This document shows, piece by piece, positions 28,939 through 62,000 of a stretch of DNA of 64,000 bases. The translations under genes were made by a program, and so were the position numbers. The notes under the pieces were generated by a model, which did not search any database, was not told where the DNA came from, and worked only from the letters and a program-made list of their open reading frames with translations. Origin of the DNA: Bugula neritina (lineage: Eukaryota; Animalia; Bryozoa); contig OZ037769.1 of NCBI GenBank assembly GCA_964035545.1, positions 868,001 through 932,000 of the forward strand, given 5' to 3'. Position 1 is the first letter of the stretch; every line of letters begins with the position of its first letter.

Positions 28939-31900
28939 TCAGATGACTGGTGATGTCATATCCTGTCTGTTCTCATAAAGAGGAACTGTTGTGTTCAGTT
29001 GAAGTTGTTCATATGCTGATGATGGAGAGGTGGTGAGCTGCTCGTAAGTGTTGGTGGGAGGATTTGCTGAGTTTGAGGGTCGAGTAGACACAGGTTCTTC
29101 ATATACTTCATGTTTATCAGATGGGGTGTCTCTACAGGGCAGACTACTTCTTTTCAAGTAGAGAATAATACTACCCAGTGTAACCACTGCTAGTACCAGA
29201 ACTACCACCACTCCAATCAAACCATCTAAACACACAAATAATTTACAGTTGATAATTGCAGGTCAAAATTAGCAAAGAAATTATGCTTAGACAAGGCAAT
29301 ATGTATAAATAAATTTGTGCGACCAAAAATGTTCAGAGTAGAACATATCTACTTGACAGATTATAAAGTTTTACAAGACAAATCAATTGTATAGATTTAC
29401 CATTGTATAGTAATGCTGTCAGAGAACTGAAAATTAAGTTGTTCATTGCTGAGCATTACTTGGGTTTAGGTAACTTATCAGTTGTAGTCAATTGCAATAT
29501 TTCGTCAATACAATCACATCTCATATATACAAGCTCACCAATATAATATTTATAAATTTGTTTATAAAGACCGTTATGGTTTGTCACAAACTACTTCCAT
29601 CCGCAATGTATTATTGTACACCTGTGCGGAAATGCAAACTATATAAAACTGTTTTAATTCAGCTCGCTAGAAGTTAAAATAAAAAAACGTGCTCGCTAAA
29701 TATTACATGGTAATAAGCCAATTAGATCAAACACACACGAGCGTGTCGCACTTCTCACTCAGCATGTTAGACACTTGAAAATCCGCACGCAACGTCCAAT
29801 TTTTGAGCTAAATAGCTTTTCTCGCACGTCACGCTCGAGCAAAACGCGTCGTGTGGCCCTACAGTAACAATAGTTTACCAGTGTCACTTACCTCTTTGTG
29901 ACTGAACAGGGAAATGGCTGTTTCCTGAAACTGCAGAAACTTTACCATCTTTGACCAACAAACAACCAGGGTCATGTGACCAGTTACCAGATTCTGTACA
30001 GACATGATCTGTAGTCTTAGTATAACCAATATCACATGAGTAGAGTAGATTATCTCCTCTGTAATATCTGTCTGTCTGTATGTCTCCGTTAGTTAGATTT
30101 AGTGCTGTAGGGTCACACTCAACTGTAAGAATAACCACGGCCACATATATGTATTGTATATACTCCTCAAAGCTGTATTACCATACAACTACAGTTTGAT
30201 GGATGTATATTATTGAAATTAGTCTAAATAATCTTACCAGTTTCAGAACATTCTGGAACACTGGACCAACTACCATCATACTGACATTGGATAACACTCG
30301 GATTTGTTTTCTTGTAACCATAGTAACAATTATACTGTAGAACTTCTTGGTAGAAATATGTGTGAGTTATCCCCCCTTTAGATGTCACATAAGTAGTTGT
30401 TGTGTTGAGAAACAAATCACTAATCTCACATTCCACTGAATAAAAAACAGCAAAGTTTTTTTGCATAATTGCATTGAGACATTATGCTATATTCATGATA
30501 TATTATAGCACAACTATATAGTATAGATATATACCTATTGTACATGTTGAAGATATATTACTCCATATCCATGGTATAATATTACTATATACATATACCT
30601 GGTGTACATGTTAGAGATATATTACTCCATATCCATGGTATATTATCTGTATCAGTAGAACTACATCTAGATACAACTTCTTCTATTCCATTTCTACTTT
30701 CATATCCTTTTATACACTCATATACTGTTGTATGAGTATCAGTCTTAGTTTTAGTAGTAAACTCAACATCTCTCGGCTCTTCTGTACAGTAGGGGACTAA
30801 AAAAGATATTTAAAAGTACTAGTTTGAATTATTAGAATACAATTAGAAGTATTATACTCAGGTATTAGATGAAGTCTATATAATATAATACTTATCATGC
30901 AAGCTTGTGCTATAAATATATACCTGGAATACATTTGATCTCTGATTGGTTGACCCACTTAGCCTCTGTACCATCTACATTACATTCAGAAGTTGAGTTA
31001 TACTTCAACTGATAGTCAGTATCTTCACAAGAATAGTTTATTATCGTACCAGGAAACCAGGGAGATTTAGTAGATGGAGTACTTGTCACATGATCTATTT
31101 CAGGTTTATCTCCACATGTCAGTACTGTGAAACATACAAAATAACATGCAGCAAGATAAACTATAATTAGTCTTATATAATATGTTTTAAAAAGAAAATT
31201 TCTCATTGGTTTGATCAGCCTAATTTCTTGCTCTGATTCTTTGCTTCTCTCACTCACCTGTAAACTGGATCATAAAGAATACTCCCTCTACATCTCCAGA
31301 TACAGGATCTGGTTCTTGTTCATATCTCACAGATAGTTGATTGTTTGTAGAGTTTATGTTATGTAGATATCCATCAGGGAAGTTAGCAAACTCCTGATTA
31401 TCAATAAACCAGAAGTCCTCTTCGAAATCATCTGTCACAATAATAAAATCAAACCTAACATAGTGAGCTGCACTTGGTAGGTTTGATATTGTAAACTCAC
31501 AGGATGGTAATGGCTGTTTATTAATTGTATAAGAGCTGGTGAATATTCCAGTCAACTGTTCAACTTGAAGTCTGTCTGGTATCTGAATATCTTCACCACA
31601 TGATGTCACTGTAACAGAAATTATGCATCCATTTTCTAATTGCTCAATTTGGTAATGCTGTATATATTAGCATAAAACATTAATTTCTTGCACAGGTTAG
31701 CTTTACCTGTAGTATGTACCTGTTGAGAAGAACTCCAAATTGAATCCTGTCATGTTGCTGAGAGTAGAAACTGATAATACAGACGGTTCTTGAGTGAACT
31801 TCTGTATTATACCTTCAGGTCTTGTAGAGTCAATACAGTATGTTGTACCATCTATTTGTATTTCTGTGCAAAAGTATCCTTCAAAATATTTATACCCAAC

Positions 31901-32266
31901 TCCTGGTATACTGATATAACTACCAGCAGGTGTTCTCAGAGTTAGACTACATCTAACAGGTGCCCCCTCTATCTCTCTATGTTCTATTATCCCTGCATAT
32001 CCTCTATCAACTGTCACTGTGTTATTATCACATATATTCACTGGTTTAATATCTTGCCCTTTTATCAATATGATGATATAACCACTCAGTAGCAGCAGGA
32101 GTTGTCTTCTGACTGACTGAAACAAGAACGTTTAATATTAGTGTATATACACTTCTACATTTTGTACAGAAAAACTCAACCAAACTCTATGCATGACTAA
32201 CCCTTTTGCACTGCTGATCCTACTAACTAATATCGGCATACTGTACATACACTGTGTACTTACCAT
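28939..32266 (-). CDS. Receptor paralogue 1: SP - CUB-like x2 - CCP x4 - TM - ITAM-type tail (class A), ~621 aa
   Basis: Exons 32264-32266 (ATG|GTAAGT), 31720-32116, 31258-31608, 30924-31124, 30599-30796, 30238-30435, 29892-30122, 28939-29225 join in frame. Signal peptide MSVRRQLLLLLSGYIIILIKG; CCP pattern C..Y.C..GY....C...G.WS..P.C; TM GLIGVVVVLVLAVVTLGSIILYL; tail YEQL-x7-YEQL. Confidence 0.85.
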
Positions 32267-33969
32267 TATATTGAAGGTACTCTGTAAGTAGGTAGTTTAT
32301 GTATATAGCTGTGATGTGTTCACCTTGTGTAGTATCTTATACACAGTATAGACTTATATATTCCCAATAATACTAGTCAGGGAGTAAAGTATAGTCTATT
32401 ATCACAAGTCAAATACTTCAGTATATATACTTGTGATTATAGATATACTTCCTTGTAGAAAGATAAATAATGTTATCACAATGATTATATTCAACTAGAT
32501 ATATGAACACCTTCACTCTAATCATTCATTCTATAGTCATATACATAGTTATCATACAATACAATATCAAGGTATATTACGTACTTCATACATGGAGGTA
32601 TACCTCTTTAGTGTTTAGTAGATGGGCTCTGCTGGTTATTCATCAACTTCTAACTGCAATTAACAATGAATTTAGAAGCCTTTCACCAAAAGGTGTAGGC
32701 ATAAGATTTAATACAATTTAAAACCATTTAGATTACCCTTTATTGTTTAAGAATTAAAAGCTACCAAAGTTACCACTGGAAAGCAATTAGGATGTACTCA
32801 TGTCTATATATTATTTGTTTTGTATAAAAGGAATAAAATAATAGTTAAGTGTTTTCTCAATGTTTATAACCAACTGCAACTGTGACAAACTAATATTTTA
32901 AAGCATACAATTAAATATAAGCACACTTTTATGCATGAATTCAACAACCTCTTGTTTAAAAAGCATACTGTAGCAGTCTCGTTTCAATTTGTAAAAAGTA
33001 GAAAATTCATTAAGATTTCTGAATTTTAAAATCTACAAAATGTATAGGCTCTGGCAAGGTCAAGGTCAAGTGAAGGGCAAACTTATGACTAGATAGGAAA
33101 CAAATAAATAATTAGAAGATATTTACTTGGAAGTTCATGCAGGAGTCCCAATATTTCCAATACCAGCAAGCAAGATGAGAGAGTATATTGTTCACAAAGT
33201 ATACAATACAGTTTACTGGGTGTATCTTAATTTATTTATATTTTAAAGGTGAATTGTTTCAATACAAGTAAAAAGTTCAGCTGTTTCTCTATTTATATAT
33301 TGTATTCCGTAGGTAGATGTTGTACAATATTAGTGTATATATTCCGTAGGTAGATGATACATGGTCTGACAGCATGGCCTTACGCAGGTACACATCTATT
33401 ACACTCATTTCTGACAAAACATAAAATTATACTACAACAGCAACTCAGTAACAACAGCTTTCCACACATGATATTAATGAATATTTTTGTCATTTGATTA
33501 TAGCTGAATATCAAGTAAACTCTTCAAGGCTCTAGATTTATGCTAGATCAGAGAGTATGATATAATTGTTACGGCAATGATATAATACAGCATGCAGAGA
33601 GATAGCTAATATTTATTAAGGAGAGAATAACTCCGTACATGTTAGTTTAAAGTTGTGTTTATACATCTTTTGAATCTCAACTCGGCCAAATTGAATTTCT
33701 GACTGAAAATCGTGAAGGTATAAAGGCAACTTTACTCTAGAGAGCAGCTCTCTTGATATTAACTATAAATGTCATTACTGAAAGCATAACTGAAACTTGT
33801 ATCTACTAAAGACAAGAGAGTATAATAATTATAATCTTTATGCAAGGAAATAAAACATACAGTGAAAAAATCTCTACTATAAAGTAACATTGTGAATTTG
33901 ATACATGTTGTATGAATAAAGGTTTATGATGCTCACGATTCCTCTCTATATTAGTTATTGTCTCAGGAG

Positions 33970-36900
33970 TTATGCCACCTTAGTTGATGGCAAATTGCTG
34001 ATGCCCACACCTACGAACTCGTAAGTGTTGGTGTTGTTGAGAGAATTTGCTGAGTTTGATGGTCGAGTAGACACAGGTTCTTCATATACTTCATGTTTAT
34101 CAGATGGGGTGTCTCTACAGGGCAGACTACTTCTTTTCAAGTAGAGAATAATACTACCCAGTGTAACCACTGCTAGTACCAGAACTACCACCACTCCAAT
34201 CAAACCATCTAAAACATGTCATGTGATTTATAAAATGTAACACAAAATAGCAAAAGTGAAAGTTTGACAGAGCTCAAAAGAATAGCACAGAGAATGTATA
34301 AATAAAATTTATAAATAAAGTGCGGCTTAATTAGTCGTTATTGAATAAAACAAAGTTATTGCTGGTAACAATGTTTGGATTTTAAAAGTGAGTCAGTTTA
34401 ATTAACCCAGAATAACATCTTTGTTTTAGTTACAATGGTCTCAATTAATTTTCCCTGAATCTGAATATTGTTTATTGTATTTCTAAAGATTTATTTGCTA
34501 TACCAACTGTAGTGGTGTAATAATAGTGCGCCTGCTGTAACCCAGAGTTCTCGGGTTCGAATCCCAGTGGGGGTAAAAGTTTTATGCTATCTCATTGGTT
34601 TGTCAGATTATCTTCTGGCTCCAAGAGTTGGTGAAACTAATTTAATGTGTCTACTAGCTGCTCATTGTATTAATTAGAAATTTAATTTTTACCTTCAACA
34701 ATCAATTTAACAGCATCAAATACCTCTTTGTGACTGAAGGTAGAGCTTGCTCTGCTCTAAGACTTTAAGACGTTTACCATCTTCAACCAACAAACAATCA
34801 GGGTCATGTGACCAGTTACCAGACTCTGTACAGACAGGATCTGTAGTCTTAGTATAACCATCATCGCATGAGTAGAGTAGATTATCTCCTCCGTAATATC
34901 TGCCTGTCTGTAAGTCTCCGTTACTTAGAATCAGTATTGTAGGGTCACATTCAACTATCGAAATAATGGAAAGCACTACTATACTTTAAGTTACTCAGCA
35001 ATCATAGTTTTGCAGTTTTTAAAAATTTGATTAAAAATACGCTGCTTATTAAAATATTAGTAACTATTCGTAACAATCGTATAGTATTGTATCAGATAAT
35101 AATGCGATTTGTGTGCAAAGGGGAGGTTATATACTTGCTTACAATAATATTATAATTTAGTATATAAAATTAAAATATACAGTTTTAGCTTATATACAGG
35201 AGTACATATATCAATTATGAACACATAATTGTTTGCAGTATATTATTACTATATATATACATATACCTGGTGTACATGTTAGAGATATATTACTCCATAT
35301 CCATGGTATATTATCTGTATCAGTAGAACTACATCTAGATACAACTTCTTCTAGTCCATCTCTACTCTCATATCCTTCTATACACTCATATACTGTTGAA
35401 TGAGTATCAGTCTTAATTTTATTAGTAAACTCAACATTTCTTGGCTCTTCTGTACAGTAGGGGACTAGAAAATACAATTATAAGTATTATATTCAGATAT
35501 TAGAGAAAGTCTATATATAATCCTAATTATACAGCCTTGTGTTATGAAAACATACCTGGAATACATCTGATCTCTGATTGGTTGATCCACTTAGCCTCTG
35601 TACCATCTACTTTACATTCAGAAGTTGAGTTATACTTCAACTGATAGTCAGTATCTTCACAAGAGTAGTTTATTATGGTACCAGGAAACGAGGGAGATTC
35701 AGTAGATGGAGTACTTGTCACATGATCTATTTCAGGTTTATCTCCACATGTCAACACTGTAAAAGTACACAGAAGTATGAGCTCATATGCGGCAGACAAT
35801 CTGCATCTTCAAAATCTGAAATAGTTTTAATTGTAGTTTTCGGAATATAATATGTTTTCCATAATGATATTTCGGTAGTGTCTTCACGCAAAACTTATTT
35901 ACTTTGCACTGCTCACTCACCTGTAAACTGAATCATAAAGAATACAGGCTCTACATCTCCAGTAGTAGGATCTCCCTCATTTTCATATCTCACAGAGAGT
36001 TGGTTGTTTGTAGAAATTATGTCATGTGGATATCCATCAGGGAAGTTAGCAAACTCCTGATTATCAATAAACCAGGAGATTCTGGATGATTCTTCAAGCT
36101 CAGTAATAATACTAAACTTAACATAGTGAGCCTCACTTGGTAGGTTTGATATTGTAAACTCACAGGATGATAATGACTGTTTATTAGTTGTATAAGAGCT
36201 GGTGAATATTCCAGTCAACTGTTCAACTTGAGGTCTGTCTGGTATCTGAATATCTTCACCACAGGATGTCACTGTAACAAAAATATGTCTACATATATTG
36301 AACATATATACTACCTTTGCCACAAAGTGAAATGGTCTTCACAGCTTGCTAGAAAACCTTTTTCATCAGGGCTCTTCTCACAAGAATAGCAAACATCAAC
36401 CCTCCTGTTATATACCAATGGACTTTATAAAGTGTTCCTAATAATATCTTACTAATTTGGTGTAACACATGTCTGATATCAAATATACTCGCTATGGTAT
36501 GATATATCCTACAACCTACAACCTAGATGCGTTATTTCTTAATGTTGATTAATCTATGTCCACCAGTCAATAGATAATTGATATTTCTTATATTCCAAAT
36601 GCCAATAAGGTCTGCTGAATATACTGTAAATATATATTGTGTTTAGGTAAGTTGAAGACATAACAAAAGTCAAAACTGAGGGCGACACTAGCTGAGACAG
36701 CAGAATTGGCCATCTGCAAACTGGCAAAATTTCATTGCTACTTCAAAAACTACTGTTTTTCAGTTTCCCTTTAAATATCTTCGTTATGTAAAATTAAAGT
36801 TAAAACTTTGCAATAAAAACATGAAATGCAGTTACGCTGCTAAATAACAGCACTTTTTAATGGTTAGGTGTTCCGCCATTTTGTCACATATACTATAACG

Positions 36901-37310
36901 TACTCGTATGCTCTCACTATACACAGCAGTGATTTACTAGTGCTGTTGGGTTGAAAGTCGGCTGCATTTTTAAAACTATAGATAAATAAGTTTGAGTTGC
37001 TGTTCACTGCTACAAATTATCTTCCAATATTCTTACACTGCCTGGAGGGTGGTGGGGGTTATTAAATGGCTGGTATCACCATTGTATAATATAGTAATTT
37101 GACACATTGAAACACTAATTTAATCATTGTCATATTATTCTACTGCAAGAGGTCAGTACATTGTTCTTATAGAGTTATATAATATATAGAGAGGTGAATG
37201 GAATGAGGCTTTAATAAACCAGCCTTGAATGTTTGAATACAAGATTAACATATAGCGAAAAATATTTTATGAAAACTACATTCTTTCCTAACATATTCAT
37301 CTAGCTATAT

Positions 37311-37381
<71 letters not shown>

Positions 37382-38095
37382 CATGTCACTCAATTTACAA
37401 AATACAAAACTTTTTGCACTTTTGCACCAAAATTTTGCTCATTCAATTAATTTTCCGCTAACTATTATAACGAAAAACTTCATAGTATTTGCATTTCCTT
37501 CAGACAACAAAACTAGCCAAAGATACATAAATATATATTAATATTTACCTGTTGAGAAGAACTCCAGGTTAAATCCTGTCATGTTGCTGAAAGTAGAAAC
37601 TGATAATACAGACTGTTCTTGGGTGAACTTCTGTATTATACCAGGTTCTGTAAAGTCAATACAGTATGTTCTACCATCTATCTGTATTTCTGGACAAATA
37701 GCACCTTCAGCAGCTACCTCAACTCCTGGTATACTGATATAACTACTTATAGCAGGTGCTCTCAGAGTTAGACTACATCTAACAGGTGCTCCCTCTATCT
37801 CTCTATGTTCTATTATCCCTGCATATCCTCTATCAACTGTCACTGTATTATTATCACACATATTCACGGGTTTAATATCTTGTCCTTTTATCAATATAAC
37901 GATGTAACCACTCAGTAGCAGCAGGAGTTGTCTTCCGACTGACTGAAACAAAAACGTTTAATATTAGTATATATATACACTTCTACATTTTGTCCCGAAA
38001 AACTGAATCAAATACTATAATGTATGATTCCCTTATGCACTGTTGATCTTACTAACTAATATCAATATAATGTACATACACTGTGTACTTACCAT
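33970..38095 (-). CDS. Receptor paralogue 2: SP - CUB-like x2 - CCP x3 - TM - short tail (class B), ~538 aa
   Basis: Exons 38093-38095, 37549-37942, 35921-36271, 35556-35756, 35267-35464, 34724-34954, 33970-34208. Lacks the third CCP exon; tail VYEEP...TYEFV...STKVA. Confidence 0.82.
34507..34640 (+). mobile_element. tRNA-derived SINE-like element in the last intron of paralogue 2
   Basis: A-box-like TGGTGTAATAA, B-box GGTTCGAATCC and tRNA-like loop CTGTAAC, followed by a non-tRNA body; second copy at 49711. Confidence 0.6.
37315..37380. repeat. (TA)n microsatellite
   Basis: About 33 TA units; absent at the equivalent site of paralogue 5 (~52395). Confidence 0.9.
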
Positions 38096-39472: not shown

Positions 39473-42400
39473 TTAAATATTTTCATAAGCTGATGATTCT
39501 AGCTGCAGCTTTTCATATGTTGGTGCAGGAGCTCCGTTGTTTTGTAACTTTTCATAAAGAGAACTTTCATTGTTTACAGGGTTGCCATTGGTTACTGATG
39601 TAGACGTGTCCATTTCCTCATAGTTGTGAGTAGCTGAGTTCACTCTGGGAGAGAGTTGAGTAGACATGGGTTCCTCGTACACATCAGGGTCAAAAAGTGG
39701 GTGGGTTGTACAGGGCAAACTATCTCTTTTCAAGTAGAGTATTATAATACTGATTGTAATCACAGCTACAGGTACTGCTATGGTCAGAGCAATGAGACCT
39801 CCTGGAAAGAAGTTAATGTTAAGTCTACATAAACATGTGCAAATTCAACAAATTTATATTCTGTAGACAGCTACTGAACTCTAGTGAGAGGGTATGTAAT
39901 ATATTCTGTAAACAGCCACTGAACTCTAGTGAGAGAGTATATAATATATTCTGTAGACAGCCACTGAACTCTAGTGAGAGAGTATATAATAGATAAAATA
40001 GAAGAAACAAGAACTTACCACTGAGTGGCACAATCTTTTCATCTATGGTAGTAGAACGAGTCATATCCTCAGATACAACACAACCAGGGTCATGTGACCA
40101 GTTACCAGACTGTGTACAGACAGGATCTGTAGTCTTAGTATAACCATCATCACATAAGTAGAGTAGATCATCTCCTCCGTAATATCTGTCTGTCTGTTTG
40201 TCTCCGTTAGTTAGGGTTAGTGCTGCTGGGTCACACTCAGCTGTTAGGAAATAACAGAGTCTGTTGAAATAATTTTACATATGAAAACATAACAAGCTAT
40301 ATTATAGGAATATTCTATTATATTTGAACCTATATATAATTACCTGTCTCTGTACATTCTGGAACACTGGACCAAGTTTTATCATGTTGACACTGTATCA
40401 CGTCCATGTTTGTTTTCTTATAACCATAGTAACAGACATATGATAGAACTTCTTGGTAGAGATATGTTTGAGTTGTCCCTCCCTTAGATGTGATGTTAGT
40501 AGTGGAATTATTGATCGAGAGATCAGTGATGTCACACTCAACTAAAGTTATTATTAAAAAACAAACTTGCGGAGGACAAGGAACATATATACGTAGTGTA
40601 AAATAAAAAATTATTATTGAAAAACAAACTTTAAATTGGCAATGAAATTTTTCGCAAAGTAATTTAAGTTGTCATTACTAATTTAGTATATTAAATTTAA
40701 ATTATGTAGTTTTGGCTATAAAGATAGTATGTAATATATATACAATATCTACACTCTACAGTGCATTATTACTATATACATATACCTGGTGTACATGTTA
40801 AAGATATATTAATCCATACCCATGGTATATTATTACTATATACATATACCTGGTGTACATGTTAGAGATATATTACTCCATATCCATGGGATATTATCTG
40901 TATCAGTAGAATTACATCTAGATACAACTTCTTCTATTCCATCTCTACTCTCATATCCTTTTATACACTCATATACTGTTGTATGAGTATCAGTCTTTGT
41001 TTTAGTAGTAAACTCAACATCTCTTGGTTCTTCTGTACAGTAGAGGACTACAGAAACAGCATTTGGAAGTATTATATTTAGTTATTAGAAAAATTCTATA
41101 TTATCCTCATTATACAGGTTTATGTTATGAATACATACCTGGAATACATCTGATCTCTGATTGGTTGACCCACTTAGCCTCTGTACCATCTACTTTACAT
41201 TCAGAAGTTGAGTTATACATCAACTGATGGTCAGTATCTTCACAAGAGTAGTTTATTATTGTACCAGGAAACCAGGGAGATTCAGTAGATGGAGTACTTG
41301 TCACATGATCTATTTCAGGTTTATCTCCGCATGTTAACACTGTGTAAAAGTAAAGAGAAAGTTGGCTCGCATATGGCAGACACAGGGAGAAAGTCCAAGA
41401 TATTTCTGAAAAAAGTTTCAGTTGTAATTTTCAGAATCTAATTTTGGCTGTGACGGCTTTATAATATTTTGATGCTTAAAAACTCATTTATGTGCGTTTT
41501 TCACTCACCTGTAAACTGAATCATAAAGAATACTGATTCTACATCTCCAGATACAGGATCTCCCTCATTTTCATATCTCACAGAGAGTTGGTTGTTTGTA
41601 GAGATTATGTCATGTAGATATCCATCAGGGAAGTTAGCAAACTCCTGATTGTCAATAAACCAAGAGGTTCTGGATGATTCCGTAAGCTCAGTAATATCAA
41701 ACCTAACATAGTGAGCTTCACTTGGTAGGTTAGATATTGTAAACTCACAGGATGATAATGACTGTTTCTTAGTTGTATAAGAGCTGATGAATATTCCAGT
41801 CAACTGTTCAACTTGAGGTCTGTCTGGTATCTGAAGATTTTCACCACAGGATGTTACTGTAAAAGAAATATACCTAGCAAAATTTACTTTAATGCTTATT
41901 ATATTTTTAAAGATATTTGCTCTACAGTGTTGAGTGAACCTTATTAAATGGGTTGCTTCTCAATGAACACTGTATAACTGATAACTAACAACACAATAGC
42001 ATATCACAACTACAGGCAAGTTAATCATTCAAACTATTTGTTAGCTAATAGATATTAGTTTTCTGTACTTTGAAAAGATTTACAAGTTTTTTACATTAGA
42101 ATTACTTATATAAATTCAAAGTGCATCCCTTTACCTGTTGTAAAGAACTCCAAGTTGAATCCTGTCATGTTGCTGAGAGTAGAAACTGATAATACAGACT
42201 GTTCTTGAGTGAACTTCTGTATTATACCAGGTTCTGTAGAGTCAATACAGTATCTTCTACCACCTATCTGTATTTCTGGACAGATATCACCTTCTTCAGC
42301 TACAAAAACTTCTGTAATGCTGATATAACTACCAGCAGGTGCTCTCAGAGTTAGACTACATCTAACAGGTGCTCCCTCTATCTCTCTATGTTCTATTATC

Positions 42401-42621
42401 CCTGCATATCCTCTATCAACTGTCACTGTATTATTATCACATATATTCACTGGTTTAATATCTTGTCCTTCTATTAATATGGCTGTGTTATAGATACTCA
42501 ACAGTAGGAGTTGCAGAGGGAAGAACTAAAATATAATTAAATTAAATAATGAAAACTGTAGATTGTAAGATTATATACTAGATACTATCCCATGTGTGTG
42601 TAAATAAGTTTTACTCACCAT
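39473..42621 (-). CDS. Receptor paralogue 3: SP - CUB-like x2 - CCP x4 - TM - multi-tyrosine tail (class C), ~629 aa
   Basis: Exons 42619-42621 (ATG|GTGAGT), 42135-42525, 41509-41856, 41139-41339, 40850-41047, 40344-40541, 40019-40240, 39473-39801. TM GLIALTIAVPVAVITISIIILYL; tail YEEP, YEEM, SLYEKL, TYEKL, SAYENI. Confidence 0.85.
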
Positions 42622-47100: not shown

Positions 47101-47544
47101 ACAGTATGGTGTACCATCTATCTGTATCCCTTTCTGTATCTCTGGACAGATAGCACCTTCAGCAGCTTCATCAACTCCTGGTATACTGATATAACTACCA
47201 GCAGGTGCTCTCAGAGTTAGACTACATCTAGCAGGTGCTCTCTCTATCTCTCTATGTTCTATTATCCCTGCATATCCTCTATCAACTGTCACTGTATTAT
47301 TATCACATATATTCACTGGTTTAATATCTTGTCCTTTTATCAATATGATAATATAACCACTCAGTAGCAGCAGGAGTTGTCTTCTAACTGACTGAAATAA
47401 GAACGTTTAATATTAGTGTATATATATAAACTCCTACATTTTGCACAGTAAAGCTCAACCAAATTCTATGCATGACTAACCCTTTGCACTGCTGATCCTA
47501 CTAACTAATATCAATATAATGTACATACACTGTGTACTTACCAT
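44127..47544 (-). CDS. Receptor paralogue 4 (class A tail, CCP x4), ~623 aa
   Basis: Exons 47542-47544, 46989-47391, 46211-46561, 45835-46035, 45544-45741, 45167-45364, 44755-44985, 44127-44413, all in frame. Confidence 0.85.
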
Positions 47545-49229: not shown

Positions 49230-52200
49230 TTATGCCACTTTAGTTGATGGCAAATTGCTGATGCCCACACCTACGAACTCGTAAGTGTTGGTGTTGTTGA
49301 GAGAATTTGCTGAGTTTGAGGGTTGAGTATACATAGGTTCTTCATATACTTCATGTTTATCAGATGGGGTGTCTCTACAGGGCAGACTACTTCTTTTCAA
49401 GTAGAGAATAATACTACCCAGTGTAACCACTGCTAGTACCAGAACTACCACCACTCCAATAAAACTATCTAAAACATGTCATGTGTTTTATAAAATGTAA
49501 CACAAAATAGCAAGAGTGAAAGTTTGACAGAGCTCAAAAGAATAGCACAGAGAATTTATAAATAAAATGTGGATAATTAATCGTAATTAAGTAAAACAAA
49601 GTTTATGCTGGTAACAATGTTTGAGTTTTAAAAGCTATAGTTAACACAGAATAACGTCTCTGTTTTAGTTAAAATCATCTCAATCAATTTTCCCTGAATT
49701 TGAATGTGAACTGTGGTGGCGTAATGGTAGTGCGCCTGCTGTAACCCAGAGTTCTCGGGTTCGAATCTCAGTGGGGGTAAAAGTTTTATGCTATCTCATT
49801 GGTTTATCAGATTATCTTCTGGCTCCAAGAGTTGGTGAAACTAATTTAATGTGTCTACTAGCTGATTATTGTATTAGAAATTTAAATTTTGCTTTTAACA
49901 GTCAATTTAACAGCAAAAACATACCTCTTTGTGACTGAAGGTAGATGTTGCTCTGCTCTAAGACTTCAAGACGTTTACAATCTTCAACCAACAAACAACC
50001 AGGGTCATGTGACCAGTTACCAGACTTTGTACAAACAGGATCTGTAGCCTTAGTATAACCAATATCACATGAGTAGAGTAGATTATTTCCTCCGTAATAT
50101 CTGCCTGTCTGTAAGTCTCCGTTACTTAGAATCAGTATTGTAGGGTCACATTCAACTATCGAAATAATGAAAAGCACTACTATACTTTAAGTTACTCAGC
50201 AATCATAGTTTTGCAGTTTTTAAAAACTTGATTAAAAATACGCTGCTTATTAAAATATTAGTAACTATTTTTAACAATGCGATTTGTGTGCAAAGGAGAG
50301 GTTATACTTGCTTACAATAATATTATAATTTAGTATATAAAAATTACAACATACAGTTTTAGCTCATACACAGGAGTACATATATCAATTATGAACACAT
50401 AATTGTTTGCAGTATATTATTACTATATATACATATACCTGGTGTACATGTTAGAGATATATTACTCCATATCCATGTATATTATCTGTATCAGTAGAAC
50501 TACATCTAGATACAACTTCTTCTATTCCATCTCTACTCTCATATCCTTTTATACACTCATATACTGTTATATGAGTATCAGTCTTAGTTTTATCAGTAAA
50601 CTCAACATCTCTTGGCTCCTCTGTACAGTAGGGGACTAGAAAAGTACAATTGGAAGCCTTATATTCAGATATTAAAGAAATTCTATATATAATTCTCATT
50701 ATACAGTTTTATGTCATGGATACATACCTGGAATACATCTGATCTCTGATTGGTTGACCCACTTAGCCTCTGTACCATCTATTTTACATTCAGAAGTTGA
50801 GTTATACTTCAACTGATAGTCAGTATCTTCACAAAAATAGTTTATTATTGTACCAGGAAACCAGGGAGATTCAGTAGATGGAGTACTTGTCACATGATCT
50901 ACTTCAGGTTTATCTCCACATGTCAGTACTGTGAAACATACAAAATAACAAGCAGCAAGATAAACTAAAACTAGTCTAATATTATATGTTTTAAAAAGAA
51001 AATTTCTCATTGGTTTGATCAGTCTAATGGTTATATTTATTGCTCCAATTATAATGTGCATTTTCCACTCACCTGTAAACTGAATCATAAAGAATACAGA
51101 CTCTACATCTCCAGATACAGGATCTCCCTCATTTTCATATCTCACAGAGAGTTGGTTGTTTGTAGAGGTTATGTCATGTAGATATCCATCAGGGAAGTTA
51201 GCAAACTCCTGATTATCAATAAACCAGGAGATTCTGGATGATTCTGTAAGCTCAGTAATAATACTAAACTTAACGTAGTGAGCTTCACTTGGTAGGTTTG
51301 ACATTGTAAACTCACAGGATGATAATGACTGTTTATTAGTTGTATAAGAACTGGTGAATATTCCAGTCAACTGTTCAACTTGAGGTCTGTCTGGTATCTG
51401 AATACCTTCACCACGGGATGTCACTGTAACAGAAATATGTCTACATATATTGAACATATATACTACTTTTGCCACAAAGTGAAATGGTCTTCACAGCTTG
51501 CTAGAAAACCTTTTTCATCAAGGCTCTTCTCACAAGAATGGCAAACATCAACCCTCCTGTTATATACCAAGGACTTTATAGAGTGTTCCTAATAATATCT
51601 TACTAATTTGGTGTAACACATGTTTGATATTTAATATACTGGCTATGGTATGATATATCCTACAACCTAGATGTTATCTCTTAATGTTGATTAATCTATA
51701 TCCACCAGTCAATAGATAATTGATATTTCTTATATTGTAAATGCCAATAAGGTCTGCTGAATATACTGTAAATAAATATATTGTGTTTAGGTAAGTTGAA
51801 TCGACATAACAAAAGTCAAAACTGAGGGCGACACTAGCTGAGACTGCAGAATTGGCCATCTGCAAACTGGCAAAATTTCATTGCTACTTCTAAAACCACT
51901 GTTTTTCAGTTTCCCTTTAAACATCTTCTTTTTGTAAAAACTTTGCAATGAAAACATGAAATGCAGTAACGCTGCTAAATAACAGCACTTTTTAATAGTT
52001 AGGTGTTCTGTCATTTTGTCACATATATATATATATATATAACGTACTCTTATCCTTTAACTATACACAGCAGCGATTTTGTTTTACTGTTACAAATTAT
52101 CTTCCAATATTCTTTTACTGCCTGGAAAGGGGGGAAGGGGGGGGGGTGATTAAAAGGCTGGTATCACCATTGTATATAGTAATTTGACACATTGAAACAC

Positions 52201-53080
52201 TAATTTAATCATTGTCATATTATTCTACTGCAAGAGGTCAGTACATTGTTCTTATAAAGTTATATAATATATAGAGAGGTGAGTGGAATGAGGCTTTAAT
52301 AAACCAGCCTTGAATGTTTGAATACAAGATTAACATATAGCGAAAAATATTTTATGAAAACTACACTTTTTCCTAACATATTCATCTAGCTATATTACAT
52401 ACTCAATTTATGAAATACAAAACTTTTTTGAATTAATTTTCCCAATAACTATTATAACGAAATACTTCAAAGTATTTACATTTCCTTCAGACAACAAAAC
52501 TAGCCAAAGATACATAAACATATATATTAATACTTACCTGTTGTAAAAACCTCCAAGTTAAATCCTGTCACATTGCTGAGAGTAGAAACTGATAACACAG
52601 ACTGTTCTGGAGTGAACTTCTGTATTATACCAGGTTCTGTAAAGTCAATACAGTATGTTGTACTATTTATTTGTATCTCTGGACAGATAGTACCTTCTTC
52701 AGCTGCCTTAACTCCTGGTATACTGATATAACTACCAGCAGGTGCTCTCAGAGTTAGACTACATCTAACAGGTGCTCCCTCTACCTCTCTATGTTCTATT
52801 ATCCCTGCATATCCTCTATCAACTGTCACTGTATTATTATCACATATATTCACTGGTTTAATGTCTTGTCCTTTTATCAATATGATAATATAACCACTCA
52901 GTAGCAGCAGGAGTTGTCTTCTGACTGACTGAAACAAAAACGTTTAATATTAGTGTATAATATACACTTCTTCACTTTGTACAGAAAAACTGAATCAAAT
53001 AATATGCATGGTTCCTTTTATGCACTGCTGATTCTGCTAACTAATATCAATATAATGTACATATACTGTGTACTTACCAT
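49230..53080 (-). pseudogene. Receptor paralogue 5 (class B tail, CCP x3), frameshifted in the second CCP exon
   Basis: Exons 53078-53080, 52538-52928, 51073-51423, 50728-50928, 50439-50635, 49925-50155, 49230-49468. The 50439-50635 exon is 197 nt versus 198 in paralogues, turning NIPWIW into NIHGYGVIYL*. Also Cys to Arg in CUB-like 2 (TSCG to TSRG). Confidence 0.75.
49711..49845 (+). mobile_element. tRNA-derived SINE-like element in the last intron of paralogue 5
   Basis: A-box TGGCGTAATGG, B-box GGTTCGAATCT; same position and sequence as 34507-34640. Confidence 0.6.
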
Positions 53081-54433: not shown

Positions 54434-57400
54434 TTAAATATTTTCATAAGCTGATGATTCTACTTGCAGCTTTTCATATGTTGGTGCAGGAATGCTGTTG
54501 TTTTGTAACTTTTCATAAAGAGAGCTCTCATTGTTTACAGGGTTGCCATTGGTTACTGATGTAGACGTGTCCATTTCCTCATAGTTATGAGTAGCTGAGT
54601 TCACTCTGGGAGAGAGTTGAGTAGACATGGGTTCCTCGTACACATCAGGTACAGAAGATGGGTGGGTTGTACAGGGCAAACTATTTCTTTTCAAGTAGAG
54701 TATTATAATAGTGATTGTAATCACAGCTACAGGTACTGCTATGATCAGAGCAATGAGACCTCCTGGAAAGAAGTTAATGTTAAGTCTATATAAACATGTG
54801 TAATTCTAACAAATTTATATTTGCAGTAGACAGCCACTAAACTCTAGTGAGAGAGTATATAATATATAAAATAGAAAAAACAAGAACTCACCACTTAGTG
54901 GCACAATCTTTTCATCTATGGTAGTAGAATGAGTCATATCCTCAGATACAACACAACCAGGGTCATGTGACCAGTTACCAGACTCTGTACAGACAGGATC
55001 TGCAGTCTTAGTATAACCATCATCACATGAGTAGAGTAGATTATCTCCTCTGTAATATCTGTCTAGTGTGATGGCACCATTAGCTAGGGTTAGTGCTGCT
55101 GGGTCACACTCAGCTGTTAAGAAATGACAAAGTCTGTTGAGGTAATTTTACATATGAAAACATGATAACAAGCTAAATTATAGGAATACTCTATTTTATG
55201 CTGATTATTGAAAGCCAGAAATAATGACCTGTTTGTGTACATTCTGGAATACTGGACCAAGTTTTATCATGTTGACACTGTATCACATTCATGTTTGTTT
55301 TCTTGTAACCATAGTAACAGTCATATGATAAAACTTCTTGGTAGACATATGTGTGAGTTGTCCCTCCTTCAGATGTGATGTTAGTAGTGGAAACATTGAT
55401 GGAGAGATCAGTGATGTCACACTCAACTAAAATAATTATTAAAAAGCAAACTTGCAGATGGCAATGAAATATTCTGCAAAAATATTTTAAGCTGTCATTA
55501 TTATAACTTAGTATGTTAAATTTAAAGTATGTGGTTTTGGCTATAAAGATTATAGTATGTAATATATTTACAATATATCTACACTTTACAGTATATTGTA
55601 AATATATACATATACATGATGTGCATGTTGGAGATATATTACTCCATATCCATGGTATATTATCTGTATCAGTAGAACTACATCTAGATACAACTTCTTC
55701 TATTCCATCTCTACTCTCATATCCTTTTATACACTCATATACTATTGTATGAGTATCAGTCTTAGTTTTAGCAGTAAACTCAACATCTCTTGGCTCTTCT
55801 GTACAGTAGGGGACTATAAAATACAATTATAGGTATTATATTCAGGTATTAGATGAAGTGTATATAATATAATACTTATCATGCAAGCTTCTGCTATAAA
55901 TATATATATACCTGAAATACATCTGATCTCTGATTGGTTGACCCACTTAGCCTTTGTACCATCTACTTTACATTCAGAAGTTGAGTTATACTTCAACTGG
56001 TAGTCAGTATCTTCACAAGAATAGTTTATTATTGTACCAGGAAACCAGGGAGATTCAGTAGATGGAGTACTTGTCACATGATCTATTTCAGGTTTATCTC
56101 CACATGTCAACACTGTAAAAGTACACCAAAGTATGAGCTCATATGCGGCAGACAATCTGCATTTTCAAAATCTGAAATAGTTTTAATTGTAGTTTTCAGA
56201 ATATTATAATGTTTTATCTATAATAATATTTTGGTAGTGATTGCATCATAATATATGTCTTCAAGCAGAACTTTTTTACTTTGTTTTGCTCACTCACCTG
56301 TAAACTGAATCATAAAGAATATTTTATCATTATCTCCAGATACAGGATCTCCCTCATTCTCATATCTCACAGAGAGTTGGTTGTTTGTAGAGGTTATGTT
56401 ATGTAGATATCCATCAGGGAAGTTAGCAAACTCCTGATTATCAATAAACCAGGAGATTCTGGATGATTCTGTAAACTCAGTAATCATATCAAACCTAACA
56501 TAGTGAGCTTCGCTTGGTAGGTTTGATATTGTAAGCTCACAGGATGACAATTCTTGTTTATTAGTTGTATAAGAGCTGGTGAATATTCCAGTCAACTGTT
56601 CAACTTGAGGTCTGTCTGGTATCTGAATATCTTTACTACAGGATGTCACTGTATAACAGACATAGCAAAAGTTTAATTTATTGCGTTATTTCTTTAGATG
56701 TGTTCTGCTGCAAATTGTATCACCTAATAAACTTTTTATTGCATATGAACATTTTATTACAAGGTTGTAAGCCTCTCAATTTTGACAATTACTATACACT
56801 TGTTGAGTGGACGTTACTAAATTATTTATTCTGTAATATACACCGTACACATGATACATAATATAACATTTCTTAACTATAACATGTACTTGTTTGTACA
56901 GACAAGTTAACTATACTTTAAAGGACCTATTGGCTAATGGATTTTATACTTTTAAATCCTGGATATACATTTTCTCCAAGAGAAAAAATTACTTACAAGC
57001 AGAGAAAACTTTGTAAGTTAATTTCACCTGTTGTATTATAATGTTTTTACCTGTTGTAACGAATTCCAAGTTGAACCCTACCATGTTGCTGAGAGTAGAA
57101 ACTGATAATACAGACTGTTCTTGAGTGAACTTCTGTATTATACCAGGTTCTGTAGAGTCAATACAATAGCGTGTACCATCCATTTGTATCTCTGAACAGA
57201 CATCAATATCAGCAGCTACAATAACTCCTGGTATACTGATATAACTACCAGCAGGTGCTCTCAGTGTTAGACTACATCTAACAGGTGCTCCCTGTATCTC
57301 TCTATGGGCTATTATCCCTGCATATCCTCTATCAACTGTCACTGTATTATTATCACATATATTCACTGGTTTAATATCTTGTCCTTCTATCAATATGACT

Positions 57401-57538
57401 GTGTAGATACTCAGCAGTATGAGTTGCAGAGGGAGAAACTAAAATATAATTAAATTAGATACGTAATGAAAACTGTAGATTGTAAGATTATATACTAGAT
57501 ACTATCCCATGTGTGTGTAAATAAGTTTTACTCACCAT
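54434..57538 (-). CDS. Receptor paralogue 6 (class C tail, CCP x4), ~629 aa
   Basis: Exons 57536-57538, 57051-57438, 56298-56648, 55912-56112, 55616-55813, 55229-55426, 54892-55113, 54434-54762 join in frame; two weak donors (CAT|GTATAT, CAG|GTCATT). Confidence 0.82.
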
Positions 57539-59034
57539 TCTTAGACTGATTTAACCAAGCAATTTCGATTCAAATATGGTTTCTAAAAAGTTACATTTAC
57601 TCTACATGTATCTGTATAGTACAAGACATGCACTGTGTGCTGCAGTTAGTCTGTAACTAAACTTATCAACTTAGCTAATGATTAGAAGGAGTTTATATTT
57701 TAACTTCCTCCTAGTACCTATAATGTATTATTCACTCAGCGCTTGCTAATTCATAAGCAAATTGAATATGATCATTAGATAAGCAAACATGTATATCTAT
57801 AGATAGTAAGCAACTTCCTTATTATATACACTATGTTGAGCATTCTATACTATAGGCCTATAATGCACTAGTTATATAGGTTATTATTTTTCTTAGTCAT
57901 TCGAATAAAGAACTATTACCATCTATTGCTGTACAATCACGGTGAAAACTGATTACCACATCTAGTATCTAACGTTATACTCACAATCCTGCTCACTCTT
58001 AGCAGTTCAGTTTTCTGTAAGAAACTTCTCTTATCACTTTTGTTTTTCTTGTTGGGTGCAAATATACAGATTTCAAAATTACAAAAGAAATATTTTGCTT
58101 TCAAAACCAAAATATGCTTCAATATTACATCAACATACATCTAATTCTAATTCATAAGTATTTTGAAAATACAATACTTGAAAAAACTGAACGACACACA
58201 CACACTGTTGTCAGTTATTGTACAGCTAATCGTATGATGTCAGATCACTTACTGCGAAGAATTAAGGCAATGCTTATAATACAGGTGTTGAGATGCTTAG
58301 CTATGGAGTTAATGTAAGAGATTAATACTCTGTGATAGATTGTATTTATTGTAATATATGATCATGTAGCTATATACAAGCTTTTAGAGAAAAAGCTATG
58401 AAAAGCTTTCATGCAGTTAAATAGATAATGCTTGATGTATATAATGTTTCCACTCTCTCTGTACTATCCAACTAGTTAACATGTCCGACTCTCAATAACA
58501 CATGTTTATCATGATTCTACAGCTAATATTGCAGAGTATCAATTTATATAGAAATTGCTTTTCATAAATTTATTGGGATTAAAGATGATGGTTTAAACAG
58601 ACTTTGTAGCAAGGTATATGTACTTGTATTGTGTAATAAAAAAATAACTTTTTAAAACTTATCTCATTTACCATATCACAGTGCAAAATACAACTACTAA
58701 TAAATTCGTTATTAAATTTCAGAGTATGTGTGCAAAAAAATAGAAAAGCAGTCAATAAAATTGTTTGTTCTGACAAATGATAAAATTCTAATATTCAGTA
58801 ATGTGAGTTTTAGTAGTGCAAAAAATAAATAATTCAAACTAAAATATAACTTTACAATACTACTGAGTTGTAAAGACCAATTCACATGGTATCAGCAAAT
58901 TGGTAAAAGCATTAAACACTAAATACAAACATGTAAAAGTTTTCTGTTGCAAAAAGCAGTAGAATCAGAAATAAAGTGTGCATAATTAAGCAAGCAATTA
59001 TAATACTGTGTTTACTGTAATATATATAGTATAG

Positions 59035-62000
59035 TCAAATGACTGGTGATGTCATATCCTGTCTGTTCTCATAAAGAGGAAGTGTTGTGTTCAGTTGAAG
59101 TTGATCATATGCTGATGATGGAGAGGTGGTGAGCTGCTCGTAAGTGTTGGTGGGAGGATTTGCTGAGTTTGAGGGTTGAGTAGACATAGGTTCTTCATAT
59201 ACTTCATGTTTATCAGATGGGGTGTCTCTACAGGGCAGACTACTTCTTTTCAAGTAGAGAATAACACTACCCAGTGTAACCACTGCTAGTACCAGAACTA
59301 CCACCACTCCAATCAAACCATCTAAAACATGTCATGTGATTTGTAAAGCAGAATGTAAAATAAAAGAAAGAGCAAATGATTGACAATAAGTAGAGTGGAT
59401 AAACCTATAAAACTCGTGAAACATAAAGCAATAGGAAATATTCTACAAAAATAGTTGAACAAAATATACTCAAATTGATTGGCTCTGACTATCCAAATTC
59501 TGGTAAATCCCTCCACTATTATTGTAAATATTAACATAAGGCTGATCAGCTGAAAGTTAAATGTCTTGACTTGACCCAATCAACTGTCAGCTTCAACTCA
59601 GTTAGTAACTGACAATGTCTATAAACTTTTTCAATCTATATACAACTTTAAACAGCATCACTTACCTCTTTGTGACTGGAGGGCTAGATAGCTGTTTCTG
59701 GTGGCTTCAGCAGATTCACCATCATTGACCAACAGACAACCAGGGTCATGTGACCAGTTACCAAACTCTGTACAGACAGGATCTGTAGTCTTAGTATAAC
59801 CATCATCACATGAGTAAAGTAGATTATCTCCTCTGTAATATCTGCCTGTCTGTATGTCTCCATTAGTTAGAGTTACCAATATTAAGGGGTACACTCAGCT
59901 GTAAGAATAACCACATATATTGTATACTCCTCAAAGCTGTGTTACCATACAACTATACAGTTTGATGAATGTTTATTATAGACATGAGTCTAAATAATCT
60001 TACCAGTCTCAGAACATTCTGGAACACTGGACCAACTACCATCATACTGACATTGGATAACACTCGGATTTGTTTTCTTGTAACCATAGTAACAATTATA
60101 CTGTAGAACTTCTTGGTAGAAATATGTGGGAGTTATCCCCCCTTTAGATGTCACATAAGTAGTTGTTGTGTTGAGAAACAAATCACCAATGTCACATTCC
60201 ACTGAATAAAAAACACAAGAGATTTCTTGTATTAATCATTGAAACATTATCCTATATTCATGGTATATTATTACGCTATATATATTATTACTATATTATA
60301 TAGATATACCTGGTATACATGTTAGAGATATATTACTCCATCTCCATGGTATATTATCTGTATCAGTAGAACTACATCTAGATACAACTTCTTCTAGTCC
60401 ATCTCTACTCTCATATCCTTTTATACACTCATATACTGTTGAATGAGTATCAGTCTTAATTTTATTAGTAAACTCAACATTTCTTGGCTCTTCTGTACAG
60501 TAGGGGACTAGAAAATACAATTATAAGTATTATATTCAGATATTAGAGAAAGTCTATATATAATCCTAATTATACAGCCTTGTGTTATGAAAACATACCT
60601 GGAATACATCTGATCTCTGATTGGTTGATCCACTTAGCGTCTGTACCATCTACTTCACATTCAGAAGTTGAGTTATACTTCAACTGATAGTCAGTATCTT
60701 CACAAGAATAGTTTATTATTGTACCAGGAAACCAGGGAGATTCAGTAGATGGAGTACTTGTCACACAATCTATTTCAGGTTTATCTCTACATGTCAGTAC
60801 TGTAAAAGTAAAGAGAAAAGGTAGCTGGCATATGGCAGACACAGAGAGAAAGTCTAAGACATTTCTGAAAAAACTTTTAATTTTAGTTTTCATAATTTTA
60901 TTTTGGCAGTGAATGTATTATAATGTAATAAAATAATGTTTCGATGCTTTTAAACTCATTTATGTATATTTCTCAATTTTACAGGCATAGAACAAATAGT
61001 AATGACCTCTCTCACTCACCTGTAAACTGAATCATAAAGAATATTTTATCATTATCTCCATTGACAAGATCTCCCTCATTTTCATATCTCACAGAGAGTT
61101 GGTTGTTTGTAGAGGTTATGTTATGTAGATATCCATCAGGGAAGTTAGCAAACTCCTGATTATCAATAAACCAGGAGATTCTGGATGATTCTGTAAGCTC
61201 AGTAATATCAAACCTAACATAGTGAGCTTCACTTGGTAGGTTTAATATTGTAAACTCACAGGATGATAATGGCTGTTTATTAGTTGTATAAGAGCTGGTG
61301 AATATTCCAGTCAACTGTTCAACTTGAGGTCTGTCTGGTATCTGAATATCTTCACCACATGATGTCACTGTAACAGAAACAGTGCAAAAGAATTATTTTG
61401 CGACTTGCTATTTATTGTACCATTTTTATACCATGTTATGGGTTTGAGCCCGGACAAAAGCCATTGGTGACGTTAGGAAAAGCATTCAGCCATAATTGTT
61501 CCTGTTCCTCATTTAAATAAGTCCTTAGCCTGCTTTAACAAAAACCCTTTCTATCCGAAGTTTCTAACAGAGATATAAACTTTCGTGAGTTTGTTTGGTG
61601 AGACATATGTGCATATAAATTTGTTAGCTATAATACCATAGTGATATAATTCTGAATAAAACCTTTGCATTGCAGGTTGTTGAAATTTATTTCTATAATA
61701 CACTTTAGCGAAATCTAGTAAAATACCCAACTTTATGATACATCCAGAACAATTCACTAAATTAAATTATATTCAAACCAAGAGAAAATTTGTTCAAGGC
61801 TTCGTTTACATAAAACAGACAAGGTGAATCAAAAATTGTCAAGAAATTCCAAAATCAGGATTCGCCTATCAAAAACAAAAGATCCAGCATAAATCCAAAA
61901 CAATTAGTTTGTCTGAACTGGATGAAAATAAGCACTTAAAAGCCAGTAACTAGACCTTAATATGGTTCTATTTATAAAGAGCTATAGTCTATGGTCTAGA

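Follow-up and report, generated by a model that had tools for sequence, protein, structure and literature searches.

Do receptors that have much of their ectodomain in common and end in different cytoplasmic tails form activating and inhibitory pairs, or do their tails differ in some other way? The question is raised by a 64-kb stretch of the genome of the bryozoan Bugula neritina (C5:868001-932000, "the window"), whose minus strand carries a tandem array of genes for predicted receptors. An initial annotation of this DNA had described three tail classes on near-identical ectodomains and had read class A as activating, class C as inhibitory and class B as a decoy, in the manner of the KIR, LILR and Ly49 clusters. 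We followed this up with searches over the 216,009,554-base assembly; the published genome of the species is 216.00 Mb in nine chromosomes (PMC11480708). The reading that we favour, with moderate confidence, is that the array encodes a bryozoan family of type I receptors in which variable heads are combined with two tails that each bear an immunoreceptor tyrosine-based activation motif (ITAM) in cis, A and C, and with a truncated tail, B.

Tail classes and their tyrosine motifs

The terminal open reading frames (ORFs) of genes 1-7 translate as the initial annotation had described (Table 1). Class A tails (genes 1, 4 and 7) contain YEEP, the ITAM YEQL-x7-Y(E/D)QL and YENR. Class C tails (genes 3 and 6) follow a different transmembrane (TM) segment and contain YEEP, YEEM and SLYEKL-x9-YEKL-x6-YENI. 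Class B tails (genes 2 and 5) keep YEEP and a single YEFV, and end in ...NTYEFVGVGISNLPSTKVA and a stop codon. The assignment of gene 8 to class C, for which the window itself offers five codons and a stop, is confirmed from the genome beyond it. The ITAM consensus Yxx(L/I)-x6-8-Yxx(L/I) is matched by A and, through YEKL-x6-YENI, by C, and not by B. After each tail had been shuffled 100,000 times with its composition preserved, the chance of an ITAM came out at P = 0.004 for A and P = 0.003 for C. A Pfam scan of the tails gave no meaningful match, NPxY is absent from all of them, and the genes have no EGF exons.

The A and C tails are diverged homologues with ~60% nucleotide (nt) identity. In the DNA alignment YEEP is common to both, the first YEQL of A pairs with YEEM of C, and YENR of A pairs with SLYEKL of C; past this point the C tail runs on with YEKL-x6-YENI. 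Because of this pairing the two ITAMs stand at non-homologous positions.

The case for an inhibitory class C came from the pattern of the immunoreceptor tyrosine-based inhibition motif (ITIM), (S/I/V/L)xYxx(I/V/L). SLYEKL and SAYENI of C do match it, and at least two such sites are expected by chance in the C tail with P = 0.014. However, SAYENI is the second half of the canonical C ITAM, which leaves SLYEKL as the sole free-standing match, and the pattern is not specific to the class, being matched in A as well (SAYEQL or LAYEQL). Since C carries a canonical ITAM and A matches the ITIM pattern, "inhibitory" does not follow for C, and the motifs do not support the assignment of the three classes to activating, inhibitory and decoy roles. 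The TM segments, GLIGVVVVLVLAVVTLGSIILYL in A and B and GLIALTIAVPVAVITISIIILYL in C, contain no charged residue; a juxtamembrane LPC, a possible palmitoylation site, is kept in every class. Because the TM segments are uncharged and the ITAM lies in cis, the adaptor mechanism of the KIR, LILR and Ly49 receptors is not found here either.

We can nevertheless ask how probable a true paired system is, of the KIR/LILR/Ly49 or the FcγRIIA/IIB type, in which A would activate through its ITAM, C would inhibit through its ITIMs and an SHP-like phosphatase, and B would be a decoy. The alternation of A and C genes with heads common to both, the two ITIM-like sites of C, a tandem-SH2 phosphatase gene in the genome, and the frame and stop codon of B, kept in four copies from two lineages, are all in line with it. 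They have to be set against the last two tyrosines of C, which form a canonical ITAM (x6) that includes one of the supposed ITIMs, and against the same pattern on the second ITAM tyrosine of A, by which the two classes are not discriminated. A charged TM residue and a short-tailed activating form are both missing, and B evolves about as fast as its flanks, has no RNA support and is frameshifted in one of two copies. An activating and inhibitory pair is possible, but we consider it unlikely, and it is not what the motifs say.

The origin of class B is visible in its alignment to A: the two are 95% identical over the first 191 nt of the TM and tail exon and unrelated beyond, with the break after NTYE. 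As homology stops after nt 191 and no ITAM remnant lies downstream, B is an A tail that was broken by a rearrangement older than the duplication of the gene triplet. No credible ITAM-coding frame lies downstream in either copy (genes 2 and 5), and the earlier view that B is not completed by a further, ITAM-restoring exon stands. Two candidate matches to a hidden ITAM exon 3' of B were rejected as AT-rich hydrophobic chance matches; they occur in gene 2 only and are absent from gene 5.

No other part of the class A and class C genes is as well conserved as their tail exons. Among class A copies, identity is 97.5% in the tail exon but falls to 86% in the sushi 4 exon, 83% in the first 200 nt of 3' flank and 56% in the intron that precedes the tail exon; in class C the tail exon is 95% identical, the preceding intron 78% and the 3' flank 65%. 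Within A, synonymous divergence is 0.023 in the tails and 0.18-0.24 in CUB1 (the first ectodomain module), sushi 3 and sushi 4, and because the tail value is so low the A tails must have been homogenised exon by exon. The ratio of nonsynonymous to synonymous differences per site (pN/pS) is 0.44 in the C tails and 0.5-1.0 in most exons.

An independent lineage was available as Joint Genome Institute (JGI) metagenome contigs that are ~9-10% diverged from the B. neritina genome. All three classes are present in it, and the check on tyrosine conservation that had been proposed for the locus comes out in favour of the motifs: two A tails retain all four tyrosines and their spacings, and one C tail retains YEEM, SLYEKL, YEKL and SAYENI with unchanged spacing. 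The coding identity of these A and C tails is 95-96.5%, compared with 85-89% in the 3' flank. Two B tails have the same end, YELVGV[E/D]NLPLTKVA and stop, and are no better kept than their flanks (89-93% and 84-92%, respectively). Class B is possibly on its way to loss, and may be either a decoy or decaying. A search with the tails against 5.8 billion proteins, short ones only, returned only ORFs of exon size, all from two JGI metagenomes; no relative of full length was among them. In a neighbouring cluster of the B. neritina genome, an A-type tail (C5:709170-709484, plus strand) carries Cys where the second ITAM tyrosine would stand (SSACEQL), a natural ITAM-loss variant.

These data also bear on the reading that the tyrosine motifs serve chiefly as YxxΦ sorting signals; on this reading the proteins would be endocytic or scavenger receptors that are internalised via AP-2 and do not signal through SH2 domains. 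YEQL, YEKL, YENI, YEEM and YEFV all match such a signal, the ITAM-less class B keeps one, and CUB and sushi domains are common in endocytic and complement-type binders (cubilin, MASP and C1r/C1s are among the Foldseek matches described below). However, sorting needs just one YxxΦ, whereas an exact ITAM spacing arose twice, at non-homologous positions of A and C, and was kept in the diverged lineage. The uniform acidic residue after the tyrosine (YE) and the YxN, YxxM and YxxP variants are also more typical of SH2 ligands. We regard sorting as the main function of the motifs as improbable.

Gene architecture and exchange of modules

The window is AT-rich (~32% GC) and its genes carry introns. 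A repeat search found units of ~5 kb nested inside a 15-kb higher-order unit, and tblastn with the exons of one gene, against the window plus 30 kb of downstream genome, found 11 genes on the minus strand, arranged A B C A B C A C A C A. The first seven of the 11 lie inside the window and genes 8-11 (C A C A) beyond it, apart from the very end of gene 8. Copies of the 15-kb triplet are 92-98% identical, intergenic DNA included.

Exon borders were fixed from an alignment of all copies. Each gene starts with a mini-exon that terminates exactly at ATG|GT and is preceded by a TATA-like box. E1 then encodes the remaining signal peptide and domain 1 (CUB-like 1, or CUB1), E2 encodes domain 2 (CUB-like 2), E3-E6 are four sushi/CCP exons, and E7 contains the TM segment and the tail. 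Class B genes are without the sushi 3 exon and have three sushi exons as compared with four. All introns are AG/GT; E2-E6 are symmetric, with phase 1 at both ends, and E7 begins in phase 1 behind a canonical AG acceptor, in agreement with the earlier observation that TM segment and tail share one exon. Exon-joined protein models were used for frame checks and identity statistics, while searches and folds were run exon by exon. Nine of the 11 genes are open throughout. The two frameshifts, in genes 5 and 7, lie outside long homopolymers. Gene 5 is probably a pseudogene, because its 1-nt deletion shifts the frame.

The description of the ectodomains as near-identical is correct for sushi 1 and sushi 2, which are 94-99% identical (nt) across classes, but not for the rest. 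Domain 2 is 85-97% and CUB1 81-94% identical, sushi 3 occurs in two types that are 75% alike, and sushi 4 with the stalk is linked to class, with ~72% identity between C and A/B. Two genes are mosaics. Gene 4 joins a C-type sushi 3 (E5; identity 91-95% with the class C genes, 72-75% with the remaining A genes) to an A-type sushi 4, stalk and tail. In gene 11 the ATG exon and signal peptide are of the C type, whereas the body is otherwise of the A type, as is the tail.

Variation in domain 1 is concentrated in one hypervariable patch, with 31-87% amino acid identity as compared with 84-96% outside it, and a pN/pS of 0.92 as compared with 0.39 in the remainder of the domain. We considered positive selection on the patch and rejected it, as a ratio of 0.92 indicates relaxed or mixed selection and is not demonstrably positive. 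The patch groups span the tail classes: one comprises g9A, g5B, g2B and g8C (gene number and class), of which g8C and g9A adjoin each other, and another g4A and g10C. Judged from the alignments, these cross-class patch types are the best support for "one head, several tails". Because genes 4 and 11 are mosaic and patch types cross classes, modules have been exchanged between classes. The suggestion that TM and tail form an output module that can be swapped as a unit is borne out in part: the unit that moved appears to be the stalk together with the tail, or the tail exon within one class, and the tail exon alone is not seen moving between classes.

The identity of the head domains is less evident from sequence than their exon plan. 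The Pfam sushi model (PF00084, cut-off 20.7 bits) recognises sushi 3 (29.7 bits) and sushi 4 (26.1 bits); sushi 1 reaches 15.4 bits, below the cut-off, and sushi 2 has no match. A C…C…C…W…C pattern is present in all four sushi exons. The two N-terminal domains had no Pfam match at E <= 1, CUB model included. AlphaFold models of them have mean confidence (pLDDT) values of 80.5 for domain 2 and 65.2 for domain 1, and nearly all of the top Foldseek matches in the PDB, although weak in score, are CUB domains (spermadhesins, MASP, C1r/C1s, neuropilin, PCPE-1, cubilin), which makes "CUB-like" a reasonable name for the modelled folds. A profile of domain 2, searched against 1.84 billion representatives, gave only ten short matches, one of them without a DNA counterpart in the B. 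neritina genome and another with 80% identity at C5:692 kb, and no homologue outside bryozoan-like DNA that could be used to compare tails in other phyla. As far as the databases reach, the family appears to be lineage-restricted. The profile search also found a family member in NCBI, KAF6039007.1, "CR2 [Bugula neritina]", a public model that is truncated and has neither TM segment nor tail; the name stems from the sushi repeats.

Table 1. Genes of the array in the window, with exons and tail motifs (window coordinates)
Feature	Position	Strand	Details
Gene 1 (class A), intact	28939-32266	-	Exon alignments; introns AG/GT; no internal stop
Gene 1, 5' exons	ATG 32264-32266; E1 31720-32116; E2 31258-31608	-	
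Gene 1, sushi exons	30924-31124; 30599-30796; 30238-30435; 29892-30122	-	
Gene 1, TM and tail exon	28939-29225	-	YEEP 29092-29103; YENR 28966-28977
Gene 1, ITAM YEQLTTSPSSAYEQL	29002-29046	-	
Gene 2 (class B), intact ORF	33970-38095	-	ATG 38093-38095; no sushi 3
Gene 2, TM and tail exon	33970-34208	-	YEEP 34075-34086; YEFV 34012-34023
Gene 3 (class C), intact	39473-42621	-	TM and tail exon 39473-39801
Gene 3, tail motifs	39476-39679	-	YEEP 39668-39679; YEEM 39611-39622; SLYEKL (YEKL 39545-39556); YEKL 39506-39517; YENI 39476-39487
Gene 3, canonical ITAM	39476-39517	-	
Gene 4 (class A), intact, mosaic	44127-47544	-	Tail exon 44127-44413; ITAM 44190-44234; C-type sushi 3 45167-45364
Gene 5 (class B), frameshifted	49230-53080	-	Sushi 2 exon (197 nt) has lost 1 nt near 50477; tail exon 49230-49468
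Gene 6 (class C), intact	54434-57538	-	Tail exon 54434-54762; ITAM YEKLQVESSAYENI 54437-54478; YEEM 54572-54583
Gene 7 (class A), frameshifted	59035-62801	-	Sushi 4 exon (233 nt) has gained 2 nt near 59883
Gene 7, tail exon	59035-59321	-	ITAM YEQL-x7-YDQL 59098-59142
Gene 8 (class C), last five codons (…YENI) and stop only	63984-64000	-	Tail exon 63984-64312 in extended coordinates

Transcripts and candidate signalling partners

To see the array in RNA we aligned contigs from two RNA-Seq runs of one "symbiont metagenome" sample, and from one DNA-like run, to 28900-34899. The RNA contigs have zero depth across most intron and intergenic bins, and their joints, GT..AG on the minus strand, match the borders of gene 1 (32116>32264, 31124>31258, 30796>30924 and 30435>30599). 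RNA contigs over 28903-29225 show that an A-type ITAM tail is transcribed. One RNA contig of 732 nt runs through sushi 2, sushi 3 and then the TM and tail exon (29225>30238), with sushi 4 skipped in frame; the ITAM tail that it encodes is intact. Where it differs from gene 1 it matches the metagenome A tail (for example, T to I in the spacer of the ITAM, or A to V in the TM segment), and because its differences reproduce that tail the contig is taken to derive from an A-type copy of another individual. By analogy, gene 7, in which sushi 4 is frameshifted, could be rescued by the same exon skip with the frame kept. Two stretches, 29500-29899 and 33500-33899, have very high contig depth in all three runs, DNA and RNA; they are dispersed repeats in intron 6 of gene 1 and in the spacer between genes 1 and 2.

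Transcription is also relevant to the possibility that the array is largely neutral, a product of recent tandem duplication and concerted evolution in which the tail classes are accidental, several copies are dead or dying, and nothing is functionally paired. The near-identity of the 15-kb triplets, intergenic DNA included, would be expected on this account, as would two frameshifted genes among the seven of the window, A tails with very low synonymous divergence and a pN/pS of 0.5-1.0 in most exons. Tail exons are, however, far better kept than introns and flanks, whether paralogues or lineages are compared. Nine genes out of 11 are intact, one A-type copy is transcribed and correctly spliced, and all three classes recur in the second lineage. 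We find neutrality highly improbable; like the sorting-signal account, it is less likely than a family of cis-ITAM receptors.

Proteins that could read the tails were looked for by scanning the genome with SH2, kinase and phosphatase models. At C7:14.371-14.378 Mb (locus C7:14369501-14379500), an SH2 domain, ankyrin repeats, a second SH2 domain and a tyrosine kinase occur in that order, which is the Shark architecture. At C3:23.740-23.748 Mb (locus C3:23739001-23749000), two SH2 domains precede a tyrosine phosphatase, the SHP/corkscrew architecture. Several single-SH2 kinases are present as well. Shark is the kinase that reads the Draper ITAM in flies, in the Draper-Src42A-Shark pathway of a protostome (PMC4503800; PMC6219719). 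Judged by domain order, candidate genes for an activating and for an inhibitory reader are both in the genome.

Some further features were noted in the window and the assembly. A Ty3/gypsy-type long terminal repeat (LTR) retrotransposon at window 7028-11716, with gag, protease-reverse transcriptase-RNaseH and integrase ORFs, has 195-nt LTRs (7028-7222 and 11522-11716) that are 100% identical, and appears to have inserted recently. A LUC7-like splicing factor (PF03194) has exons at 24509-26222 on the minus strand, and the region of this gene contains an RS/DR-rich repeat (24535-24870) that is open in several frames. At 1239-1680 a repeat with a 9-nt period lies inside an ORF rich in Leu/Val and Ser/Thr runs. 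In small contigs of the assembly (e.g. C10:262-966, C33, C37, C44, C66 and C176), kinase and phosphatase matches cross many TAA and TAG codons and almost never TGA, which suggests that the assembly includes contigs of an organism that uses a ciliate-type genetic code.

Comparison with known receptor systems and a possible mechanism

The closest analogues of the array, as we see it, are FcγRIIA/IIB for cis motifs below near-identical heads, Draper-Shark for mechanism, and the Botryllus and Hydractinia clusters for genomic logic, and it belongs to none of them. FcγRIIA and FcγRIIB are neighbouring genes with very similar ectodomains, and the motif is in the receptor tail, with no adaptor and no charged TM residue. 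FcγRIIC is an unequal-crossing-over recombinant, so that exchange of TM and tail modules is known in the FcγRII genes. However, the FcγRII ectodomain is of the Ig type and has no homology to the CUB-like and sushi ectodomain of the bryozoan array, and the tail of FcγRIIB bears a single clean ITIM without an ITAM, unlike class C with its full ITAM.

With the KIR, LILR and Ly49 clusters the array has in common its tandem arrangement, variable heads, alternative tails, gene conversion and pseudogenes; clustered genes with closely similar ectodomains on different tails are found in both. The likeness does not extend to mechanism. The activating members of those families have a short tail and a charged TM segment and take their ITAM from DAP12 or FcRγ, unlike the receptors studied here, and the inhibitory members have ITIMs only whereas class C bears an ITAM. 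Their ectodomains are Ig-like or C-type lectin domains, again unlike the CUB-like and sushi modules.

Draper, of the CED-1 family, is a protostome receptor with a cis ITAM that is read by an SH2-ankyrin-SH2-kinase (PMC4503800; PMC6219719), and the same kinase architecture occurs in B. neritina. It differs in having EMI, NIM and EGF repeats and NPxY, and in being a single conserved gene, not a variable tandem family. The inhibitory form of Draper comes from a splice isoform and not from a paralogue.

Members of the Botryllus schlosseri fester/FcoR and Hydractinia Alr families are partitioned by ITAM or ITIM motifs (PMC12582321; PMC9546547). Like the array, these are lineage-restricted, clustered and fast-evolving invertebrate receptor families. 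They have Ig-like recognition domains, however, and the fester proteins, with three TM segments each, carry no such motifs themselves; the loci of these families are genetically tied to allorecognition, whereas the bryozoan array is known from sequence, with no link to a phenotype. Finally, the combination of CUB and CCP domains is found in the N-terminal modules of C1r, C1s and MASP, in CSMD and SEZ6, and in KAF6039007.1. The bryozoan genes differ from CUB-sushi proteins in having no protease domain and another domain order and number, and CUB-sushi proteins have no ITAM tail.

In the reading that we favour, the signal peptide of each receptor would be followed by two CUB-like domains, then by three or four of the sushi/CCP type, and finally by a TM segment and a tail with tyrosine motifs. 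The family would have been assembled from symmetric phase-1 exons and amplified as the 15-kb A-B-C unit and as A-C pairs, and unequal crossing-over and gene conversion would couple the head, with its one hypervariable CUB1 patch, to alternative membrane-proximal and tail modules. We infer phosphorylation of the tails, recruitment of SH2 proteins and a biological role. Specifically, a Src-type kinase would phosphorylate the YExx sites of the A and C tails, and the doubly phosphorylated ITAM of either class would recruit the Shark-like tandem-SH2 kinase, driving activation or engulfment in parallel to fly Draper or mammalian FcγRIIA. A and C would then probably differ in their secondary outputs rather than in sign: A would add YEEP (YxxP) and YENR (YxN), and C would add YEEP, YEEM (a YxxM of the p85 type), a third YEKL and, at the last tyrosine of its ITAM, a YxN. 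Class B, which keeps the TM segment and YEEP of A and has no ITAM, would be a signalling-poor or competing form.

A number of observations weigh against this reading. Every motif also fits a YxxΦ endocytic sorting signal. The pN/pS within the A tails is 1.15, although from few changes, and because these tails have been homogenised their similarity alone is no proof of selection at the protein level. The Y-to-C paralogue of the neighbouring cluster suggests that the ITAM is dispensable in at least one copy. The RNA support consists of assembled contigs from one sample and concerns an A-type copy of another individual. Over the B-specific part of the gene 2 tail there was no RNA contig (zero depth), and as the depth over the A tail is itself low, class B is better described as not detected than as silent. 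The matches to the CUB fold are weak (E ~1e-3, TM-score 0.45-0.55), with a pLDDT of 65.2 for CUB1 and no Pfam CUB match.

A more far-reaching idea is that the array is a bryozoan system for discriminating self from non-self, or symbionts from pathogens, in which matched CUB1 patches would feed into the distinct ITAM outputs of A and C and into a dominant-negative B, with cells integrating the ratio of the three, and which would have originated independently of the vertebrate, tunicate and cnidarian systems. We think this doubtful at present. B. neritina is colonial, houses a defensive bacterial symbiont and competes for space. Clustered and fast-evolving receptors split by ITAM- and ITIM-type tails are known from vertebrates, Botryllus and Hydractinia, and our literature searches found no description of clustered receptors partitioned by ITAM and ITIM, or of ITAM receptors, in bryozoans. 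What is new here is the same genomic logic made from unrelated parts, CUB-like and sushi heads with a cis ITAM. Were such a discrimination system real, paired-receptor logic would have been invented independently a fourth time, and for the first time in Lophotrochozoa.

The locus is a caution against inferring "inhibitory" from an ITIM-like pattern alone. It also supplies testable material in the form of short tail peptides, Shark-like and SHP-like genes of the same genome, and natural Y-to-C and truncated tails, and it opens the question of whether variable receptor families in the animal kingdom have taken up ITAM signalling modules more than once.

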